A stretch of DNA of 64,000 bases. Source: Pelomyxa schiedti. Lineage: Eukaryota; Protista; Evosea. Positions 18,401 to 33,050 of the stretch are shown one piece after another. Position 1 is the stretch's first letter; each line of letters starts with the position of its first letter. The notes beneath the pieces were generated by a model. That model was not told the DNA's origin, made no database searches, and saw only the letters and a list, made by a program, of their open reading frames with translations. The DNA lies in contig JAHLWZ010000626.1 of the NCBI GenBank assembly GCA_020536535.1, positions 1 through 64,000 of the forward strand, in the 5' to 3' direction. A program made the translations under genes and the position numbers.

Positions 18401-19134
18401 TTCCAATTGATGCAGCAGTACCCATCTGCATTTCAATTTAATGACTCCTTCCTTGTTTCGATTATGGAGGCTAGTTTTTCGGTACAATAAAAAGTTTGAG
18501 AGTAACAGTTTCCTAGGAAGCTCTTATTGGGCGGTTTGGTACTTTCTTGGGTAACTGTGATCGACAACGCTCTCAGTTGGCCCCTTCTGTGGTGTCCCTT
18601 TGGGACAATCTGCACCACTTACAACATCCTCAACGATCACTTTCACAGCGGCTCAGATACCCCAAAAGTGGCAACTCCAGCAATGTTAATACAACATGTC
18701 CTATATTCCTTGACTTTATAATAGGCGAACTGCAAGTCGTCCATTTTCCCATTTGTTAACCCTTACTACGACCCATTGTACAAAGATACAATCACACCTA
18801 TGGTAATTCTAGACCTCTGATATTAAAATTCTAAGCAAACGAATAGATTGGGGCACACAACTTGCAACTATGGACGAATTACTACTTCCGGCTGATGCCA
18901 GAAGGAACAGACACAATGTCTATAGCAAATGACCAGAGACTGTATAAATTCATGGAGATGAAAACTCTTATCAGAGACCTCCAGCACGAAATAGCCACCC
19001 TCAAAGGTGACCCACAACAGAACAGCAACGCAACGGAAACAGAAGAACATCAACCGCGCACACCACAAGCAACCACAACAGTCCCACGACCTAACAACAC
19101 TACCGAAACCACAGAATTCTGGCAAGGAGTCTAA
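15461..19134 (+). CDS. Myotubularin-family phosphoinositide 3-phosphatase (GRAM + phosphatase + coiled coil); start uncertain
   Basis: [12 protein letters not shown]; WRISTVN; [12 protein letters not shown]; [11 protein letters not shown]; [17 protein letters not shown]|EWLKIGHKF; [10 protein letters not shown]; FGTFLGNC. Confidence 0.92.
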
Positions 19135-19205
19135 CAATAAAAATAGCAGCACAACAACCAAAAAAAACGGAAGAAAAAAAAGGATTTTTTTTCTCGGAAA
19201 GTGTG

Positions 19206-19227
19206 CGACCCATAATTGCGACGCACA
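19206..19227 (+). promoter_or_regulatory. DUSE-like ncRNA upstream element (CGACCCATAATTGCGACGCACAG)
   Basis: ACCCATAA at 19208 matches the Dictyostelium DUSE consensus WCCCAYAA. It lies 62 nt before the conserved TGAAC that begins the structured element. Confidence 0.6.
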
Positions 19228-19269
19228 GGGATTTTTTAGATGGAAAAGATTCCGGAGAGGGGTGAGGAG

Positions 19270-19560
19270 TGAACTGCCTCACCGTTGTGGGGTGTTCAGC
19301 CTGTAAAGCTTCGTTGGTGTCCGACCACGGATCACAGTCAGAGCATTATGCGGGTTTCCGCGGGCTTTGGCTGTTCCTTGGTCAAATGGCCCAAACGGAC
19401 ACAAGATTTGTCGCCGGAGTCAGCGTCGTCCCAGTCTGGTACTGGACAAGCCCTGCTGGTTATGGCGAATAGCCGCCACCTAGGGTGATGGATGAAGGGC
19501 CAGGCTGCTGGAGACCTGCTCCAAATGGCTGTGCTTGTGACGGATGCTGCAGGTTTTTTT
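19270..19560 (+). ncRNA. Unassigned ~290-nt structured ncRNA, copy 1
   Basis: Homologous to 21038-21332 with compensatory changes in several stems; terminal stem CCTGTA/TGCAGG; T7 run at 19554-19560; upstream DUSE-like element. Confidence 0.7.
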
Positions 19561-19680
19561 GGTTTTGATTGTGGTTTCCCCACCAGTGGCGATACCATTA
19601 AAAAATGATTGACAGAGATCCTCTGGTTTAGTGTTTGGGAGTTGTTTTAATGTTTAGGAAGCTGGCACTGAGGGTGTTAG

Positions 19681-20820
19681 ATGAAAACACCCACCTCAAG
19701 TTGGGTTCTTGCATCAGAGATGATAAGAGATCCATCGAAGGGGAGTGCGTCACCCCAAGTTGGGGGTTGTGCCTGTCCCACAAGTTGGACCCAAATCGAC
19801 GAGTGTGTTGCAGAGGCCGTCGTAAGGAACGTGGGCGATCTGCCAACGTTGGTTGCGCTCGACCTGGTCAACAAACAGTTCCACAGATTCGCGTCCAAGT
19901 TGGTGCTGTTGTTGCTTGTGTGTTTTGGGAGTCCGTCTGTGTGTAAATCATTCCGTGCATCCAATGTTCCTCATTATTCTTAATACACATCCAGAGATAC
20001 TTAAAAAAAAAAGGTAGGAAGCTGAACCTACTTCGCAGTACACACATTTTGTGGCTAACAGAGCGTGACAAATCAGTGGCGCGAAATGGAACTACTCCGG
20101 GGGAAGTCATTACAGTCAGGGTTGTTTGAGGGATGAACCGGGTGGCGACTTTGCAGGAAGGTTCTTTGTTGTAAGTGCACCAGTTAGGGGTGGAACTGTC
20201 ACGTTGGAGCTGTGGGGTATGTATTTATCCACCATCTTTTAATAATGGGCGTTTGCTCCTGGTAAATAGACACTGAGACAGAAAGATATCCCGCATGGAG
20301 ACATGTGTGTATTTTCCCAATGTAAACCTCAAGGCCAATTCCAAAATAGATAAGCGGCCAGTCAAGAAATTGCCGCGAACCGATTGTTATTGTTCTTGTA
20401 TACGATGTTACAAACTTCTTTCCCTTTGATGGTCTCTACCAAATTGTCAATGAGTGCCGAGGACAGTGGTTACCCAAGGTAAATGGTTTTTTTTATCTCT
20501 GTTTATATTATCTGAAGTTCAAAAATGATATGTCATACTATCTATAAGTGGAAATTTACACTACCACCAACCAGTTCCTTGTTTGTGGCAACAAGGCTGA
20601 CTTGAACCGCAGCCCCAGTTCTTGTGGTGGTGGAGGAGTCACATACTCACAAGGGCAGGACTTCGCAAGAGCCAACAGCTGTGATGGGTTTATTGAAGTC
20701 TCCGCTAAAGCCAATAAGAATATACCGGAACTGCTCAGGGCTATTGGAGTTCTAGCCCTGGAGGATGCGGATCAAAAACAGCACCAGACTGAGGACCGAT
20801 CCCATTGTAGCCTGATGTGA
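19681..20820 (+). CDS. Divergent Ras-superfamily small GTPase with an F-box-like N-terminal segment and C-terminal CaaX
   Basis: Degenerate G1 (CFGSPSV) and G3 (LELW|DTETERY); IVLVYDVT; LVCGNKADL; FIEVSAK; ends CSLM. Confidence 0.75.
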
Positions 20821-20972
20821 GTGTGATGTGTAACCAAGGAAACTGCAAACACAAAAAACCATGCTAAAGAAGCTTCTCATTCTCACTTCTAGAGGCAACT
20901 TCCTCATAAGCATGATTGATTGAAGGGTCAGTGTGTGCCCCTGAGTGCACCAGGGTCTTTTTCTTTAGGTCC

Positions 20973-20996
20973 CGACCCATACTTGAAACACACAGG
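20973..20996 (+). promoter_or_regulatory. DUSE-like ncRNA upstream element (CGACCCATACTTGAAACACACAGG)
   Basis: Aligns with 19206-19227; lies 63 nt before the TGAAC of copy 2. Confidence 0.55.
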
Positions 20997-21037
20997 ATTT
21001 CATAGCTGCCAAAAGCTCCCAAAGTTTGGGCTCTGTT

Positions 21038-21332
21038 TGAACCTCCTCAGAGTTATCTGACGAGGTCAGCCTGCAAAGCTTTGCTGGTGACCGACCTTGG
21101 GTCAACAATCAGAGAACAGGGCAGCGTTTGCAGCCTAACGCTCTGGTTGCCTTGGTCAAATGGCCCAGACGGACGCAAGATTTGTCGCCGGAGCAGCTTT
21201 TCCCCAGCCTGGTGCTGGACGACCTGGTTTCAGGCAAATTGTCGTTACTAGGGGTTAGGATGAAGGCATCAGGCTGCGGGAAACCCGGCTCCAAATGGCT
21301 GTGCTTGCGACGGATGCTGGCAGGTTTTTTTT
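21038..21332 (+). ncRNA. Unassigned ~290-nt structured ncRNA, copy 2
   Basis: See copy 1; T8 run at 21325-21332. Confidence 0.7.
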
Positions 21333-21441
21333 GGCTTGTATTGAGTCGATTTTCTTGTGATCACCCCCTGACACTCAGCTGTGACTCATGGGATGGTGTG
21401 TAAACGGTTGCGGAAAATAGGAGCGACGAGGAGACCTGCGC

Positions 21442-24275
21442 ATGGACACGGCGAAAGGCGATGATGGGACGGCGGTGGCGACGAAGACCAACGAGGGGGT
21501 GATTGTCTCGAGTGATGGAGAGACACTGAGGGTTGGGGAAGAGGGCCCTTTGTTGATTGAGGACTTTGTGTTCAGGGAGAAGTTAACTCACTTTGACCAC
21601 GAGGTGGGTCTTGGGGAATACCATGCCAACAAGCAATTTCGTTTTTGCCCTGGATTGGATTGGATCGATTCGAGTTGAATTGAAAATGCGGGGAAGATTC
21701 ACTCTCATGTGAGTGGGTCCAAGCTTTTTGATTCTCTCCCTTGTAGAGAATTCCAGAGAGAGTTGTGCATGCAAGGGGCTCGGGAGCACATGGATATTTT
21801 GAACCAGTGGAAGGAGCTTCTAAAGTTTGCAAGGCTGCTTTCTTGAAATCACAAAGCAAGACTCCTGTGTTTGTGCGTTTTTCTCAAGCTGTGGGAAGCA
21901 GAGGCTCACCAGATACTCTGAGAGATGTTCGTGGATTTGCTGGTAAGCTCTCCTTTGTATCTTCCCTCCTCCGAAGCTTATGCTTGATACAGTCAAGTTC
22001 TATACCAGTGAAGGAAACTATGACATAGTTGGAAATAATTTTCCCGTTTTTGTGATACAAGCAAGCATTGAAGTTAAATACTTTGGCTTCTTAATCATCT
22101 TCCTCAGGATCCTATGAAATTTCCCGATTTTGTTCATGCTAATCGTCCTGAACCAAACAGCGAGATTCCAAATAACTCTAGTGCACATGCAACTTTCTGG
22201 GATTTCGTGGTGAACACACCCGAGTCAGCACATCACGTACTGTGGTATGCCTCGATTTATTTATGAAACTTTCCTACATAAAACCCAGGCAAATGTCAGA
22301 CCGCGCACTTCCCAGAAGTTACAGGATGATGGAAGGGTAATTACTATTTGGGCAATTTATGGTTTATTTATACTCATATGCAGATTCGGAATCAATTCTT
22401 TTTACATACAAAATGATGAAGTTGTCCACCTCAACTTAAGTTTTACTATTTACATACAAATAGGGTAAAAGGTTTGTTGCCAAGTTCGTTTTTAAACCGC
22501 TTCTTGGTTCACACTCACTTGTTTGGTACACCCTCGTTCTCCGATATTGGCATAATCTTCACTCAGGGATGAAGCGCAAAAGCTTGCAGGACATGACCCA
22601 GATTTCTTGAGACGGGACTTGTGGGAAGCTATTGAACAAGAAAACTGGCCAGGCATTACTCAGTACTGGAATCGACTTCTTACTTTTGTTGTAGAGTACT
22701 CTTTTGGTGCCCAACTTATCTCTGAGGAAGAAGCACCAAATTTCCCTATTGACATTCTGGATCCTACAAAATTGTGGCCGGAAGAATTAGTGCCAGTCAC
22801 ACCTCTAGGGAAATTAGTATTGAACAGAAACCCAACAGACTTCTTTGCAGAAACTGAGCAAGTTGCTTTTTGTCCAGCTAACATTGTGCCTGGGATCGAC
22901 TTCACTGATGATCCAATTTTACAAGGTAATTTAACACAGGCTGCAGTTCCATTTAAGCCACAATTCAGGTCGACTATTCTCCTATTTGGATACACAACTT
23001 TCAAGATTTGGTGGCCCAAACTTTACCCAGATACCCATCAACAGACCTCTTGTTCCCGTTCATAATAACCAGCGTGGAGGATTCCATCAAATGGCAATTA
23101 AATCTGGCCGTGTAGCCTATTCCAACAACACAATCTGTGCGGATAAACCAACTCCCTCTAGCCAGCTGGGGTTTGTGACGCACCCCACACAAGTTTCCGG
23201 ACCAAAAGTACCACCTTTACTATACTTCCTCATCTGATCATCTTAGTTACGAATCAAGCCAAAGAAGTTTGGAGATTATTTCAGTCAAGCTGAGGTGTTT
23301 TGGAATAGTCAATCCCCTGTAGAGCAAGCACATATTATCACCGCATTTGGATTTGAATTGGGAATGATAGACCCTCCTCTTCGTCTCGCTGTAATCGAAC
23401 TTCTCGAAAAGGTACAACTTATCCTTATGTCATTTATCCTAATTCAAACTCAGGTGAGTCCTGACCTTGCCCACAAGGTTGCAAGAGCTGTGGGGGCCCC
23501 ATATAATGTCTTTGAACCGAAGCTTGCGTCTAGTCCTGTGTTCACGTCATTATCTTTGCTACCGTCCCTGCCTCAACCACTCAAGTTTGTTCTTTTCCAA
23601 TTTTTCATCCGCCTAGTGCCCTGACCTTTCGATTCTTATAGAACCATGAAAGTGTGCCTTCTTATTGGCAACGGGTTCGTGCAGCAGCAACACTCGCTAC
23701 TTCTTTCCGTTCTAACACGGCTGGGAACAACCCCCGTCACCATCACTGCTGCCCCGCAAACGGTTTCCACACAACAGATAACAGCCAGCGTTACACCAGT
23801 GTCATCAGCCAGTGTTCAGATGTACTACAGCAGCCTGGTCACAGCCAAGTCCACAATGTTTGATGCTGTGTGTATCCCTGGAGGATCCGGGATTGATGTA
23901 CTGATGGGAATGGCACTAGCGAGGTTTGTTCTGACACTATACAAACACCACAGCAACTATCAAACACTCGCACAATCAAAAACCAACATAAACCGCATAC
24001 ACAGGCAATTCGTTGAGGAAGCTTTCACACACTACAAGCCTATCATTGCTCTGGGAGATGGAATCAAGCTACTCACAGGCCTCCCAGACTATGTGGCAAG
24101 AGCCGGCCTTGCTCCCACTCCTTCAAAGCTTGCCCCATCAGTGATGCAGCCACGTGGAATAGTTGAGAGCCATGGAGTATTTACTTGTGCTGATGTGTCC
24201 GCTATCCCAGAGTCTGAGTTAAGTGCCGCTGTAATGACTACACTATCACAGTGGAGGCACTGGGACAGGATTTGA
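21442..24275 (+). CDS. katE: Large-subunit (clade 2, HPII/KatE-type) heme catalase with a C-terminal DJ-1/flavodoxin-like domain; about 13 introns
   Basis: FDHE|[18 protein letters not shown]; VFVRFS; RDVRGFA|[15 protein letters not shown]; LQG|RLFSYLDTQ; [12 protein letters not shown]; [12 protein letters not shown]; ends RHWDRI. Confidence 0.95.
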
Positions 24276-24339
24276 ATTTGCAAGGATACCAACTAAGAAC
24301 CCGGAAACCAGAATGAAGTGAACATAATAAATAGTCCTG

Positions 24340-25591
24340 TTACGATTTCCACATGAGGAGCTCTACTTGTGATTGTGTGAGAGGTGTTAGAGTGAAGTAC
24401 AGGGAACGCATGGTGCCGTTGAGCTCACGATCGCTGCCATCGGCCTTCCATCCGATATGCCATGATTTATGTGGGGGGTCGTTGTGCTGGAGGTTGAGAG
24501 CCGACTGGTCCTGAATATTGTGTAAAGTTTCTGAGGAGGACCTCACGCCGTTAATCCATGTGCTAAGGGTAGCAGTTTCACGATTCCAAACAAAGGCCTA
24601 ATGTGTTCACTTGGTTAGGATTCTAAAGTTAAAGAACGGTACCAAATGCACCCATTTGTGCAATGGGATGGTATTTGGGCAACAGGTGCCAATCAGGCCT
24701 TGTTCAGGGTCGCTGCCATATCCACAGCGTGACCGTGCCCCAAGTGGTGTATTCCAAAAATCTTTCCTAAGAGAGCAAAATGGTCTTCCTTGGGCAACTC
24801 CTGTGTTGAAAACCCAAGAAGCTGCCCAGTCGGCAAGAATGTAGTTGTACTCGGAAAAGTACCTGAATTTCAGCCTAGGGGATGTCATAATGCATGACAA
24901 GAACATGAGGACAAACCATGTGGCGATAGTGAAACTGCTCTTTTCAAATGGTTGAGCTGGAATTTCTGCATACGCATACCTATCTACGAGGAGAAGACCC
25001 TCGTTGGTAAAAGAAGCAGTTCCATGGAGTTTGACCTCATTGGCACCATGCTTATCCCCACACATTACCCAGTTTTTCCCTTCTGGGGCATTTGGAAGTG
25101 CTGCCGCCCATCTTCTCATGGCATCATGAAGTGCGTGAGAAACTCGGGATAATAAGACCATCTCTTTAGGAGATAGGAAAGATGACAGAGTATCCATTAT
25201 GACAGGGCAGGAAATTACAGCCTCTGCACCCATGCACTCTGAAGAGGGGCCCATTTCTAATTGACGTTTCAGTTCAGTGAATCCTTGCATCAGCTTCGAT
25301 GATGTCTCCAATTTCACATTGATCTCTCCAAATGCGAATGGTGTGAGATCACAGAGCTCCTATGGAGTTACTTAAGAGTTGCGATAAATTATTATCCATT
25401 TTTTGAGAACAAGAAAAGCATACATCGATGGATTTGTCTCTAAGTAGGTCGTACACTGAAACAGACATGAGAAGCTCTTTCATTTGTTTACGTTTCTTGA
25501 ATAAATAAAGGTTAGAGCCAGATGCGAATGCATGGAAAAAAACATGGTACTCCCGCAAAGCCTCAGTAGTGGTATCCATAGACGACTGCAT
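24340..25591 (-). CDS. F-box-like + LamG/concanavalin A-like domain protein
   Basis: ILxxFLSPKEMVLLSRVS-like F-box segment; SFTIATW; KWVHL|AFVWN...TWING; WHIG...LNGTMRSLYFTLTPLTQSQV. Confidence 0.65.
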
Positions 25592-25731
25592 AGATCTGGA
25601 GAAAAGTATCAAATACCGTAACACCGTAGTATTGTTTATTTTCTGTGTTGGCGTCCAGGCTCCCGCTGTGTTTTTTTGTTTAATTGCGTTTTCTACCGTA
25701 CTTCAGACGAAGAAGGTGCTGTGATGTTTGC

Positions 25732-25746
25732 ACCCATAATTGTGAC
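25732..25746 (+). promoter_or_regulatory. DUSE-like ncRNA upstream element (ACCCATAATTGTGAC)
   Basis: 14/15 identical to 19208-19222; about 70 nt upstream of a box C motif. Confidence 0.6.
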
Positions 25747-25799
25747 TCGAGGCACAGTTCCGAGTGTAACGGTTCAAAGGGTTGCCGGTTTCGTGTAAG

Positions 25800-25965
25800 G
25801 AAATGTGATGACAACAAAAGCGCATAATTCCATAATGTTTCACCCAGTTTGACGATGAATTCCACGCACAACAAAGTCTATTGGCTTTGGTTGCGTGGAA
25901 CCTCGTTGGCTGGGGCATGTTGGTGATTAAAAATGAGTTAGTTTTCAATCTGATATTGTTTTTTT
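25800..25965 (+). ncRNA. Box C/D snoRNA-like RNA (~155 nt) with a long internal hairpin
   Basis: Box C GTGATGA at 25805-25811; box D CTGA at 25950-25953; short terminal stem AATG/TATT; T7 run at 25959-25965; internal stem CCCAGTT..TTCCACGCA..AAAGTC/GGCTTT..TGCGTGGAA..GGCTGGG. Confidence 0.7.
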
Positions 25966-26004
25966 GTTAATAAGTCTATATCCACAAACAAAAGCTGGCT
26001 ACTC

Positions 26005-28622
26005 CTACATCCCCAGGAAGTTGGTGAGATCCGTCAATATTTGCTGAAATTTGGGTCTTGTAGTGAATTGAGTTAGTCCTGGCTTTCAGGGAAGAGGAAA
26101 AACTCAAAATACCTGTTGTTAGGATCATGGTGCCAACAGGCCGAAATGAGGTTTCTTATTTGACTTGGAACACTGGGGGGAATAGGCAAACGGGCCTTCC
26201 TGTCAACAACAAAAGTAATGATTTCGCCTTTTTCCATGCCCGCAAACAATTCCAGCTGTGTTGCGAGTTCCCAGAGTACAACTCTATGCACATGTGTTAT
26301 TCGAATTTTTTTTTTTTTTTTTTTTTTTTGGAAGCTTTCTTACCCATAGCTGTATACATCGCACTTGGGAGTATAGTGAATTTTGTTGGCACCTGGAAGC
26401 GCAAGAAGCTCAGGCGCCATATATTCCAGTGTGCCACCAAACTCAGAAACATCTTCAATACTGAGGGATGTCATGAAATTCTGGGAGCCTGAGAAAGAGA
26501 AAGCATCTCTGCGAAGTGAAGAAAACCCAAAGTCACCTGAAAACAAGATAAGGTCCATGATGGAGGAAAAGGGGAGTCAAACCAATTTTAGCATGGAGAT
26601 CGGAGGTGATAAATATATTGGAGGCCTTAAAATCCCTATTATCAACATGGTGAGGGGCAAAACGCTAAGGTAAACGCAATTACCTATGCAACACAGTTGG
26701 ATTATTACAGTGCAAGTAGTTCATCCCTAGAGCAATCTCTCTGGCAATTCGCATCCGTTTGTCAAATGAAAGATCCTACAAAGGTAAATTACTTCTTTAG
26801 AAAATAAAATGAAGTGTGCCATTACCCGCTGTTTTTTCAGCACGTCGCTCAGTGAACCAAGTTCCACGAACTCCATTATCAGAGCTATATTGAAGGGTAC
26901 ACTCTCATCACCTAAATTCCTGGTCAGTGATACACCCTGTGTCAGCAGTTAAGACAATGGAATTTTGTTCTTTCCACATTACGATAAATTGGCAGATGTT
27001 AGGGTGTCTTAGTTTAGCCATGATAGAAATTTCTTGACAGAAACTTCTTAACTCTTGGTGGTCACCTAAAGGATGTGACACCAGTTTAAGAATAGCCACG
27101 TACCCATACTTGCTCTCAGGTCTACTTCTATCTGCTTTACTGCAACTCTAAGTCCTCGGAATTTAGCTTGGTAAACTATGCCAGCCGCTCCAGTGCTTCA
27201 TATCGATCAGAAGAAATAAGAGGATAATGGAAGGCTCACCCAATCTTTGGACCTAGGATGATTTCCTCCCATGGAATAGAAGTTATGCTACTATGAACTT
27301 CACCTTGTAACAACTTCCTCACAACATTCTCGGCCGCTGAGAACTGAAATAAGACAATGTTTAATATTCTTGTCATCATACCATGAGTGTTCTGTGAAAC
27401 TGTCTAAAGTTATATTTCTAACATAAAGGTTACTTCAAAATACCTATTTCCTTTTCAGCCAGAGGAATACCCTTATTTTCAAATCTACTACTACTGGAAG
27501 GAAGCCAATGATATGTGATTACTTGAACAAAGCAAGGGACAACTTCACCACTGAGGTAGTATACTAGTAACCACGCAAACGACTTTGTGAAGTCGTCTGG
27601 GTCATGATAGTAGTCATCTGTGCAGTGTTTATTTCGTGAGAGAGAGGCAGATGTAAACCAATTAGTGTAAATCTATGGCCACCACCCTCATCAGCATCCG
27701 ATTCAATGCAAGTTGTGGGTAAAAGTAACAAGATGGAACGAAAAATACAGCACACAACAACAATAATCCCGCATACGAACAGCATCCAGTAAGCCTATTG
27801 CACTGTGAGAGATTATCGTACTGCAAAAAAGAAACTGTTCTATTAGACAAGGGAAAACCAATAGTATTGTATTCCCTGCGTTTCTTTAGTAAGACAAGGG
27901 AAATAGCTGTATTTTCGTCTGTTAGAAAAAAAGGTGTACAAAGGATAACTCTCACCTACACCAATGCAAAAAAATATGATCCCAAGAAATAGAGTAGCAG
28001 TAACTTGCACCATGCTTCTGCAGAAGATAAACAACTAAAATAGAGATCGACACAAAACCTTGACAAGAAAGTTTCTAACAAACTGTCAATCCAAAAGAGG
28101 ATCATGAATGTGATATAGGAGAAGCTGTTACATGCAATCAAGATTTTCCCAAGTTTGTTTAATCTCGGAATTAAATGTGCGTGGGGTAATGCCTGGTAGA
28201 AAGCTACACTGGCTTAGGTGCAAGATAAGATTTTTGTTTGAAAAATCATACTATTGTCTTCATAGACTCTATAAAACTGCAGATTAAGGATTTAAGCAAG
28301 GTAATAAACAAAATCCGCATACATAAATAGTAAGAATACTGAAGTACAGCATTGAAGGTGTAGTGTCTAAAATATGTACGCAAATGAAGGGTCACACAAT
28401 ATTTTTAAGAGAAAGAGCAACAATGAAAGGTGTAAGGATATCAGATGGCATTGGTTTGCGCCCAGTATCACTAAAAGCAAGGGAAAAGCATGCAACTCTC
28501 ACTATTAACAGTATTGAGCACTCACTGGAAGTAGAAATTGGCATCACTACCCATGCACAATACAATACAAAATCCCAGCAACAAATTTCTGTGCTTCTTG
28601 CCACAACGCAAGGCATGCACAA
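26005..28622 (-). CDS. Multi-pass (7TM-like) membrane domain fused to a TKL-family protein kinase
   Basis: Successive hydrophobic exons at 27500-28620, then IG|TGAAGIVYQAKFRGLRVAVK, FCQEISIMAKLRHPNICQFI, DFG, GTLEYMAPE, KCDVYSYG, CWHHDPNNRP. Confidence 0.8.
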
Positions 28623-32023: not shown

Positions 32024-33050
32024 GGTTCCTCCCACAATCGGAAGCAGCGCCTCTTCTTCGCCCTCATCGAATTCCGACGTCGCTGGAGCCACAACAAAAA
32101 GTTTCACAGGCAACGCTGCTTCAGAGAGGCCACAACTGTCCCACAATTGCGCGGCGCCAACGCCCACCCCCCCGAGTGCCGNNNNNNNNNNNNNNNNNNN
32201 NNNNNNNNNNNNNNNNNNNNNNNNNNNNNNNNNNNNNNNNNNNNNNNNNNNNNNNNNNNNNNNNNNNNNNNNNNNNNNNNNCCCTCATCGAATTCCGACG
32301 TCGCTGGAGCCACAACAAAAAGTTTCACAGGCAACGCTGCTTCAGAGAGGCCACAACTGTCCCACAATTGCGCGGCGCCAACGCCCACCCCCCCGAGTGC
32401 CGAGTCACCCGAATGGTTTGAAAGCATTAGGAAGACAACGCAGGAACTCGACTTGGTCGAGCGCATCTTCTCCGAGAAAAAGGCAAAAATCAAGGAACTC
32501 GGTGCGTGTATCTCCATCATTATTGTTTTGTTTGGTTTAACCGCTAACAACACAGGTGAGGCACTGGACAAAGAAAGGAGCCAAAACACTGCCACGAAGT
32601 CAGAAGTGCGCGAGTTAGAATCCTATGTCACGGCACTTGGTGTGTTGCTTGTGTTCACATCTACCTTCGGTGAATTCATCAGCCTTCTAGGCAATCAGCT
32701 CTCAAAGGAAAGGCTCGCTCACCAGACCATGAAGGAGGAGTTAGAATTCCAAATCAAGGGACTCAGTGAGTGTGACTTTTCCCTTCTCACCTGTGGAGGA
32801 ATTCCGTTAACAATCTTCAAGCGGCTGCTCTGACCAAGGAAAAGAGTAATCATGTTAAGACCTATGATGAGCTATGGCACACAAGGTCAGAGCTTCGCCA
32901 AGTCAGTAAGGCCAATCAGGATCTCAAAGATTGTATGAACATAAGTTTCTTGGTCCTCAGCTCATTGAAAACAGACTGCATGGGAAGGATTCACCACATG
33001 GAGGATGACCTAGAGGACATGAAGAGCCATGTCAAGAAGTCGGATCATTG
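32024..33050 (+). CDS. Hypothetical coiled-coil protein (boundaries uncertain; interrupted by a gap artefact)
   Basis: Short exons with heptad-like content (QELDLVERIFSEKKAKIKEL|EALDKERSQNTATKSEVRELE) separated by GT-AG introns. Confidence 0.45.
32061..32402. other. Assembly gap (100 N) flanked by an exact 121-bp duplication
   Basis: 32061-32181 is identical to 32282-32402. Confidence 0.9.

Follow-up and report, generated by a model that had tools for sequence, protein, structure and literature searches.

A DUSE-like upstream element before three candidate small-RNA genes in Pelomyxa schiedti

In a 64,000-nucleotide stretch of the genome of Pelomyxa schiedti (contig C626, JAHLWZ010000626.1; the whole stretch is referred to as the window), three intergenic segments that resemble genes of structured RNAs, here units A, B and C, are each preceded by the word ACCCATAMTTG, which resembles the Dictyostelium upstream sequence element (DUSE). 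The locus therefore raises the question of whether this word is a promoter element of the type used by small nuclear RNA (snRNA) genes and whether the three units are genes in their own right. Pelomyxa is an anaerobic and barely studied archamoeba, distant from Dictyostelium within Amoebozoa. Our genome-wide counts cover the P. schiedti assembly of 52,367,397 bases in 5337 contigs; the published single-cell assembly is described as 52.4 Mb in 5337 scaffolds (PMC8887013). Based on the comparison with known genes given below, the three boxes are very likely copies of an snRNA-type external promoter element, [AT]CCCA[CT]AA(T), with units A–C as independent genes of the type that RNA polymerase III (Pol III) reads.

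The three units and their upstream boxes

Exact matches to ACCCATAMTTG occur four times in the window, all on the + strand, at positions 19208, 20975, 25732 and 27102 (ending in AATTG, ACTTG, AATTG and ACTTG, respectively); the last of them is absent from the initial annotation. From the first base of the motif to the conserved TGAAC there are 62 nucleotides (nt) in unit A (19208 to 19270) and 63 nt in unit B (20975 to 21038), and from the motif at 25732 to the box C of unit C there are 73 nt when counted to GUGAUGA or 74 nt when counted to UGAUGA. All three units end in a T-run. The sites, the spacing (62, 63 and about 70 nt) and the T-run ends reported in the initial annotation were thereby borne out by reading the sequence. 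Counted from CCCA, the onset of conservation between units A and B lies at 61-62 nt and the box C of unit C at 72 nt, which leaves a leader of about 10 nt. The 5' ends of the three units were taken from the spacing to the element. The features are as follows.

19208..19218, + strand: DUSE-like element of unit A (ACCCATAATTG; core CCCATAA at 19209-19215), CCCA 61 nt before TGAAC and within the 58-68 nt of nearly all known genes
19231..19238, + strand: proximal T-rich box of unit A (ATTTTTTA; T6 at +23 to +28 from CCCA), positioned as the T-run in the promoters of U6, signal recognition particle (SRP), RNase MRP and U3 RNA genes
19270..19560, + strand: unit A, candidate gene of a structured RNA (about 285 nt) with a T7 end (19554-19560); 5' end from spacing
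20975..20985, + strand: off-consensus DUSE-like element of unit B (ACCCATACTTG; core CCCATAC, seventh core base C instead of A)
20997..21003, + strand: weaker proximal box of unit B (ATTTCAT, +21 to +27), similar to the ATTTCGAAAA box of U3 promoters
21038..21332, + strand: unit B, diverged paralogue of unit A by alignment and consensus fold, ending in T8 (21325-21332)
25732..25742, + strand: DUSE-like element of unit C (ACCCATAATTG; core at 25733-25739), followed by GGCACAGTTCCGAG, similar to GGGCACACATTTCGAA of a U3 promoter
25794..25965, + strand: unit C, candidate single-copy C/D-like RNA of about 165 nt (box C GUGAUGA at 25805-25811, box D CUGA at 25950-25953, T7 at 25959-25965); 5' end from spacing
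27102..27112, + strand: fourth exact match (ACCCATACTTG), with no T box and, from about +100 to +450, no run of five or more T (T5+)

The core [AT]CCCA[CT]AA is satisfied in units A and C (ACCCATAA), and unit B (ACCCATAC) deviates from it at the last base. By chance, the 11-mer would be expected about 0.02 times in 6.5 kb, and two independent promoters are seen there, with A and B counted once because they are related, plus C. Units A and B are paralogous, with 80% identity over an alignment that includes the flanks and 77% over the RNA, and they are the only two copies of this RNA in the genome. Upstream of the RNA, the two are alike mainly in the box and in CACAGG-ATTT; their flanks have diverged. 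Their consensus fold contains 77 pairs, of which 6 are compensatory. Unit A has a proximal region, GCACAGGGATTTTTTAGA, that resembles those of U6 and SRP genes. Unit C occurs once in the genome and carries an RUGAUGA-type box C near its 5' end and a box D near its 3' end; it folds with a stable central hairpin (z = -2.87).

No Rfam family was matched by units A, B or C in scans of the window and of 19000-28000 with E up to 10. SRP, MRP and RNase P RNA were considered as identities for units A and B and rejected, as genes for all three were located elsewhere in the genome.

The element before known small-RNA genes

We located the canonical small-RNA genes with Rfam models across the whole genome and read their upstream regions. 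CCCAYAA was found upstream of 56 of the 58 Rfam-defined genes examined, distributed over the families as listed here.

U6: 21 genome matches; CCCA[CT]AA in 10 of 10 examined
U2: 33 genome matches; CCCA[CT]AA in 10 of 10 examined
U1: 25 genome matches; CCCA[CT]AA in 7 of 8 examined
U4: 10 genome matches; CCCA[CT]AA in 7 of 8 examined
U5: 18 genome matches; CCCA[CT]AA in 8 of 8 examined
SRP: 6 genome matches; CCCA[CT]AA in 6 of 6 examined
RNase MRP: 1 match over the cut-off; CCCA[CT]AA in 1 of 1
RNase P: 1 genome match; CCCA[CT]AA in 1 of 1
U3: 8 genome matches; CCCA[CT]AA in 6 of 6 examined

Outside the SRP family, the element was present in 50 of 52 genes at 53-68 nt before the Rfam-predicted 5' end, and at 58-68 nt in 49 of these 50. 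In the SRP genes it lies 14-42 nt before an Rfam start that is itself ill-defined, and when anchored on the box these genes align with the others. Control windows of the same size contained the word in 4 of 47 cases far upstream and in 1 of 47 downstream. The consensus of the element in P. schiedti is [AT]CCCA[CT]AA(T). The initial annotation had named the known snRNA genes as the place where an absence of the motif would count against it; the core of the motif is present there. Its description of an extended DUSE-like promoter stood in part: the DUSE-like core precedes the known genes, but the extension does not, since TTG follows CCCAYAA in only 4 of 55 cases. Consistently, the two bases after ACCCATAAT were TG in 14 of 100 sampled sites, with CG equally frequent, and the enrichment of the exact 11-mer genome-wide (164 versus 35 for the reversed word, 4.7x) is no higher than that of the 9-mer core (745 versus 143, 5.2x). 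TTG is not part of the element.

We then aligned the upstream regions by anchoring them on the box and counted promoter and terminator features. This separated the known genes into two classes.

Pol III-type (U6, SRP, MRP, RNase P, U3; n=24): box in 24 of 24; ATTT or TTTT at +19 to +30 (the T box) in 19 of 24; T5+ at the 3' end in 24 of 24
RNA polymerase II (Pol II) type (U1, U2, U4, U5; n=34): box in 32 of 34; ATTT or TTTT at +19 to +30 in 4 of 34; T5+ at the 3' end in 2 of 34

The Pol III-type genes mostly have YTTCGG at the start, T as the Y of the element and A before CCCA (13 of 18 in the aligned set). The Pol II-type genes are characterized by GGGG at +23 to +26, an A-rich stretch at +30 to +32 and an A-rich 3' flank.

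Plant U3 is transcribed by Pol III. The U3 genes of P. schiedti (8 copies) have T-run ends and the ATTTCGAAAA box, which suggests that Pol III reads them too. Several U1 genes, such as those at C455:34088-34542, are arranged in head-to-head pairs with two inverted boxes between which there are about 10-20 nt (ATTATGGG...CCCATAAT). Boxes in this inverted arrangement are also found at C4:133929/133948 (C4:133929-133956), with no known gene adjoining.

These features suggest a mechanism in which a complex similar to the small nuclear RNA activating protein complex (SNAPc) would bind the element about 60 bp upstream and position the polymerase. In this scheme, Pol III genes would be marked by a T-rich box some 23 bp past the element and by termination at a T-run. 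Pol II genes would have neither mark and would show instead a G-rich and then an A-rich stretch, placed a few bp downstream of where the T box lies in the Pol III class. For units A, B and C, the predicted starts are about 60-65 nt downstream of their elements. A SNAPc-like reader of the box is plausible, since the genome encodes homologues of SNAPC3 (at C985, 122 bits summed) and SNAPC1 (at C57).

Weighing units A, B and C

Does the box in front of the three units mean the same as in front of the known genes? The architecture of the units and its match to known genes are direct observations: the marks resemble those of type 3 Pol III genes, with T box and terminator in units A and B and the terminator only in unit C. 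As the initial annotation had proposed, the element argues for units A, B and C being real RNA genes, and this holds when it is taken together with the Pol III-type features.

The simplest alternative is that a frequent octamer happens to precede three structured or T-run-ended stretches and has no promoter role. The octamer CCCAYAAT is indeed found 22 times in the window, versus 5.3 +/- 2.3 in dinucleotide shuffles, or about once per 3-4 kb, and CCCAYAATG is found 3154 times in the genome, versus 671 for the reversed word. Most generic sites are devoid of RNA-gene features, and the match at 27102 looks like such a site: it lacks a T box, and from about +100 to +450 there is no T5+ run. It also carries the same near-background variant as unit B, ACCCATACTTG, which made up about 23 of the first 100 sites listed and hence roughly 38 copies, compared to the approximately 26 that arithmetic on base composition predicts; for these reasons the 27102 copy is most likely a chance occurrence. 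Coincidence at all three units is nevertheless highly improbable in our view. The spacing to the conserved RNA start equals that of nearly all known genes, all three units end in T-runs, the box is where the sequences upstream of A and B are most alike, and a T box at the right position, seen in 19 of 24 Pol III-type genes, was found in only 4 of 84 generic sites.

The latter number comes from a survey of the exact 11-mer, for which 96 other sites were fetched and a non-redundant set of 84 sites, which includes units A and C, was scored. Behind the 96 sites we recognized two U1 genes and three sites each of two small families, and an Rfam scan of 60 of the 96 loci returned one U1 gene only; the remaining sites had no common downstream architecture. 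The suggestion that the motif could serve as a genome-wide handle for non-coding RNAs (ncRNAs) accordingly failed, with 8 of the 96 other sites preceding recognizable RNA genes and an octamer that is 4-5x over-represented. Requiring box, T box and oligo-T end together selected, among the 84 sites, only unit A and the first of the two families, whose RNA is about 110 nt long. It is this combination, with the T box at +19 to +30, that is specific; the box alone is not. A simple count of ACCCATAA-N14-20-TTTTT (76 matches versus 52 in the control) is uninformative, because T-runs inflate both numbers.

The first family starts with ACCCATAATTGCAAC, has a T box and a ~110-nt RNA ending in T14, and is present in at least 8 copies; its loci include C76:4789, 6944 and 9045, C1369, C1384, C1880 and C2050, behind ACCCATAATTGCAACGGAGGCCGA and a T box. 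It has GTTCAGCC-GT-A-G in common with units A and B and no Rfam match. The second family (~125 nt; C165:24958, C165:80583 and C224:262) starts with TTTTCGGGTTGG about 60-70 nt after the box, ends in T9-T11 and likewise has no Rfam match. The composite pattern also exposed an SRP-type variant class, ACCCATAAGTA. Beyond the six Rfam SRP genes, ACCCATAAGTA with a T-run is found at about ten places (e.g. C165:26800, C204:448, C294:14932, C409:1068, C803:105280 and C3089:739), which may be additional SRP-like genes or Pol III genes of another kind.

Several points weigh against reading all three units as Pol III-type genes. The octamer is so common that a single copy is weak evidence by itself. TGAAC is closely preceded by a possible hairpin arm in unit A (GGTGAGG...CCTCACC) as well as in unit B (CTCTG...CAGAG), so that these RNAs may start some nucleotides earlier than the spacing suggests. 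The core of unit B, CCCATAC, matches none of the 56 known core-bearing promoters. Unit C has no T box, and its minimum free energy (MFE) fold has no C/D terminal stem; by eye, a terminal stem of 4+4 bp with one mismatch is possible using the U tail, and it is absent from the MFE fold. Finally, factor binding, the polymerase, the start sites and the expression of units A–C are predicted from the DNA sequence.

Unit C, with its T-run but no T box, is arranged like 5 of the 24 Pol III-type genes known. In U3, itself a C/D RNA, the element is found at -60 to -62 and box D is followed by T-runs; U3 thereby provides a precedent in this genome for a box-plus-T-run gene of the C/D type like unit C.

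Given its degenerate element, unit B may be a weaker or decaying copy. A stronger version of this idea, in which its box is a nonfunctional relic of the duplication and the unit is decaying or silent, would account for the core not seen among the known promoters, the weakening of the T box to ATTTCAT and the near-background frequency of ACCCATACTTG. We consider it unlikely, given that the 6 compensatory pair changes relative to A and the intact T8 terminator suggest selection on the RNA, and that the box is conserved better than its flanks.

A third possibility is that the word is a general regulatory site serving the neighbouring protein genes, namely a catalase gene downstream of unit B and a minus-strand gene ending about 130 nt upstream of the element of unit C. 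Several copies in the window are at or near the 5' end of same-strand open reading frames (ORFs), and roughly 10,000 excess copies genome-wide are far more than the roughly 150 recognized small-RNA genes could account for. This too appears quite improbable as an explanation of the three boxes, which point at RNA units at the canonical distance. In unbiased sampling, generic sites showed no association with start codons or with ORFs that follow them (an ORF of at least 60 codons at 4 of 40, versus a 16.5% baseline), and they have no intergenic preference. We therefore retain the snRNA-type promoter element as the explanation of the boxes before units A–C.

The catalase gene is an intron-bearing gene of the large-subunit type at 21440-24280 (+ strand) of the window, between units B and C, whose exons match Pfam Catalase, Catalase-rel and Catalase_C. 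The introns make bacterial contamination an unlikely source. The P. schiedti genome paper describes catalase as not present (PMC8887013). A search for sequencing runs containing the stretch returned four and no RNA run; over 20900-26000 (5101 letters) the four were DNA contigs with introns retained, probably the source of the assembly. Elsewhere in the window, an N gap in the region 32212-32300 lies between the copies of a duplicated stretch, with CCCACAAT at 32140 and 32361 and identical flanks; this looks like an assembly artefact.

An over-represented octamer and related promoters

The abundance of CCCAYAAT is a finding of its own. The octamer is 4-5x over-represented, an excess of roughly 10,000 copies by extrapolation, compared to some 120 Rfam small-RNA gene copies. 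Its total, extrapolated from the 3154 copies of CCCAYAATG, is roughly 12-14 thousand. In 165 kb away from snRNA genes, Markov models of order 1-4 predicted about 5 copies of CCCATAAT and 10 of CCCACAAT, and 21 and 27 were seen, with the constituent hexamers near expectation; base composition was thereby rejected as the cause. Repeats or paralogues were rejected as well, with 100 sites falling into 86 clusters. An overlap with start codons (CCCAYAATG) was hinted at by 4 cases in the window and by 6 of 13 non-snRNA sites, and was rejected with the unbiased sample given above. No signal was seen for mRNAs that would start at +60 and have a long ORF from their first ATG. A coded peptide (e.g. Leu-Trp on the reverse strand) was rejected because the frames were flat, and an intergenic preference because the sites were slightly more ORF-covered than random positions. 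A literature search on the word CCCAYAAT returned nothing relevant. One tentative idea, to which we give limited credence, is that CCCAYAAT is, beyond its part in snRNA-type promoters, a functional word across the genome. The excess copies would then be orphan SNAPc-type units, thousands of them, or else 'extra-SNAPc' binding sites that act in chromatin or regulation. If true, an snRNA-specific factor would have been recruited for a general genome function in the Pelomyxa lineage.

Among known systems, the element is closest to the DUSE, [AT]CCCA[AT]AA, which lies about 63 bp upstream (PMC3188802). In Dictyostelium it is found ~60 nt upstream of both Pol II and Pol III genes, and the authors of that study did not expect sequence or distance to be conserved outside Dictyostelia (PMC7919456). 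The core in Pelomyxa, [AT]CCCA[CT]AA, matches it, as does the distance. In both organisms the element precedes small-RNA genes of the Pol II and of the Pol III class, among them those of orphan RNAs that are lineage-specific and end in T-runs (PMC7919456). Unlike the dictyostelid DUSE, the element of this archamoeba is usually followed by T (CCCAYAAT), is accompanied in the Pol III class by a T-rich box at +23, shows no TGTG box in our promoter alignments and is hugely over-represented in the genome.

The plant upstream sequence element (USE) has the sequence RTCCCACATCG. With the plant USE and TATA box and with the animal proximal sequence element (PSE), bound by SNAPc, the Pelomyxa element has in common an external position at -55 to -70 before both Pol II and Pol III snRNA genes, and a polymerase class that tracks a second, T/A-rich proximal box and its spacing. 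Its sequence departs from the plant USE beyond CCCACA and from the animal PSE. Subunits of SNAPc, a complex whose mechanism is described in PMC11696126, are present in Pelomyxa, and SNAPc may bind the box. In Entamoeba, the nearest studied member of the Archamoebae, A-richness is all that has been described for the upstream regions of the same class of genes, and the description includes no DUSE-like box (bioRxiv 10.1101/2022.06.08.495308), in contrast to the box in Pelomyxa. In the literature searched, we found no report of an archamoebal element with the core and distance of the DUSE. The comparison of sequences identifies the Pelomyxa box as the Dictyostelium DUSE in sequence and distance and as the counterpart of the animal PSE and plant USE, an element of a kind already known.

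For Pelomyxa, the results provide a rule for separating Pol II-type from Pol III-type small-RNA genes, and they support three unannotated RNAs as genes, two of them representing a ~285-nt structured RNA without a family. The box alone is unfit for ncRNA discovery in this genome, and the 4-5-fold excess of the octamer is a concrete question that the genome raises. For the group, a DUSE common to Archamoebae would imply that the element is much older than the dictyostelids, contrary to the expectation in the literature.

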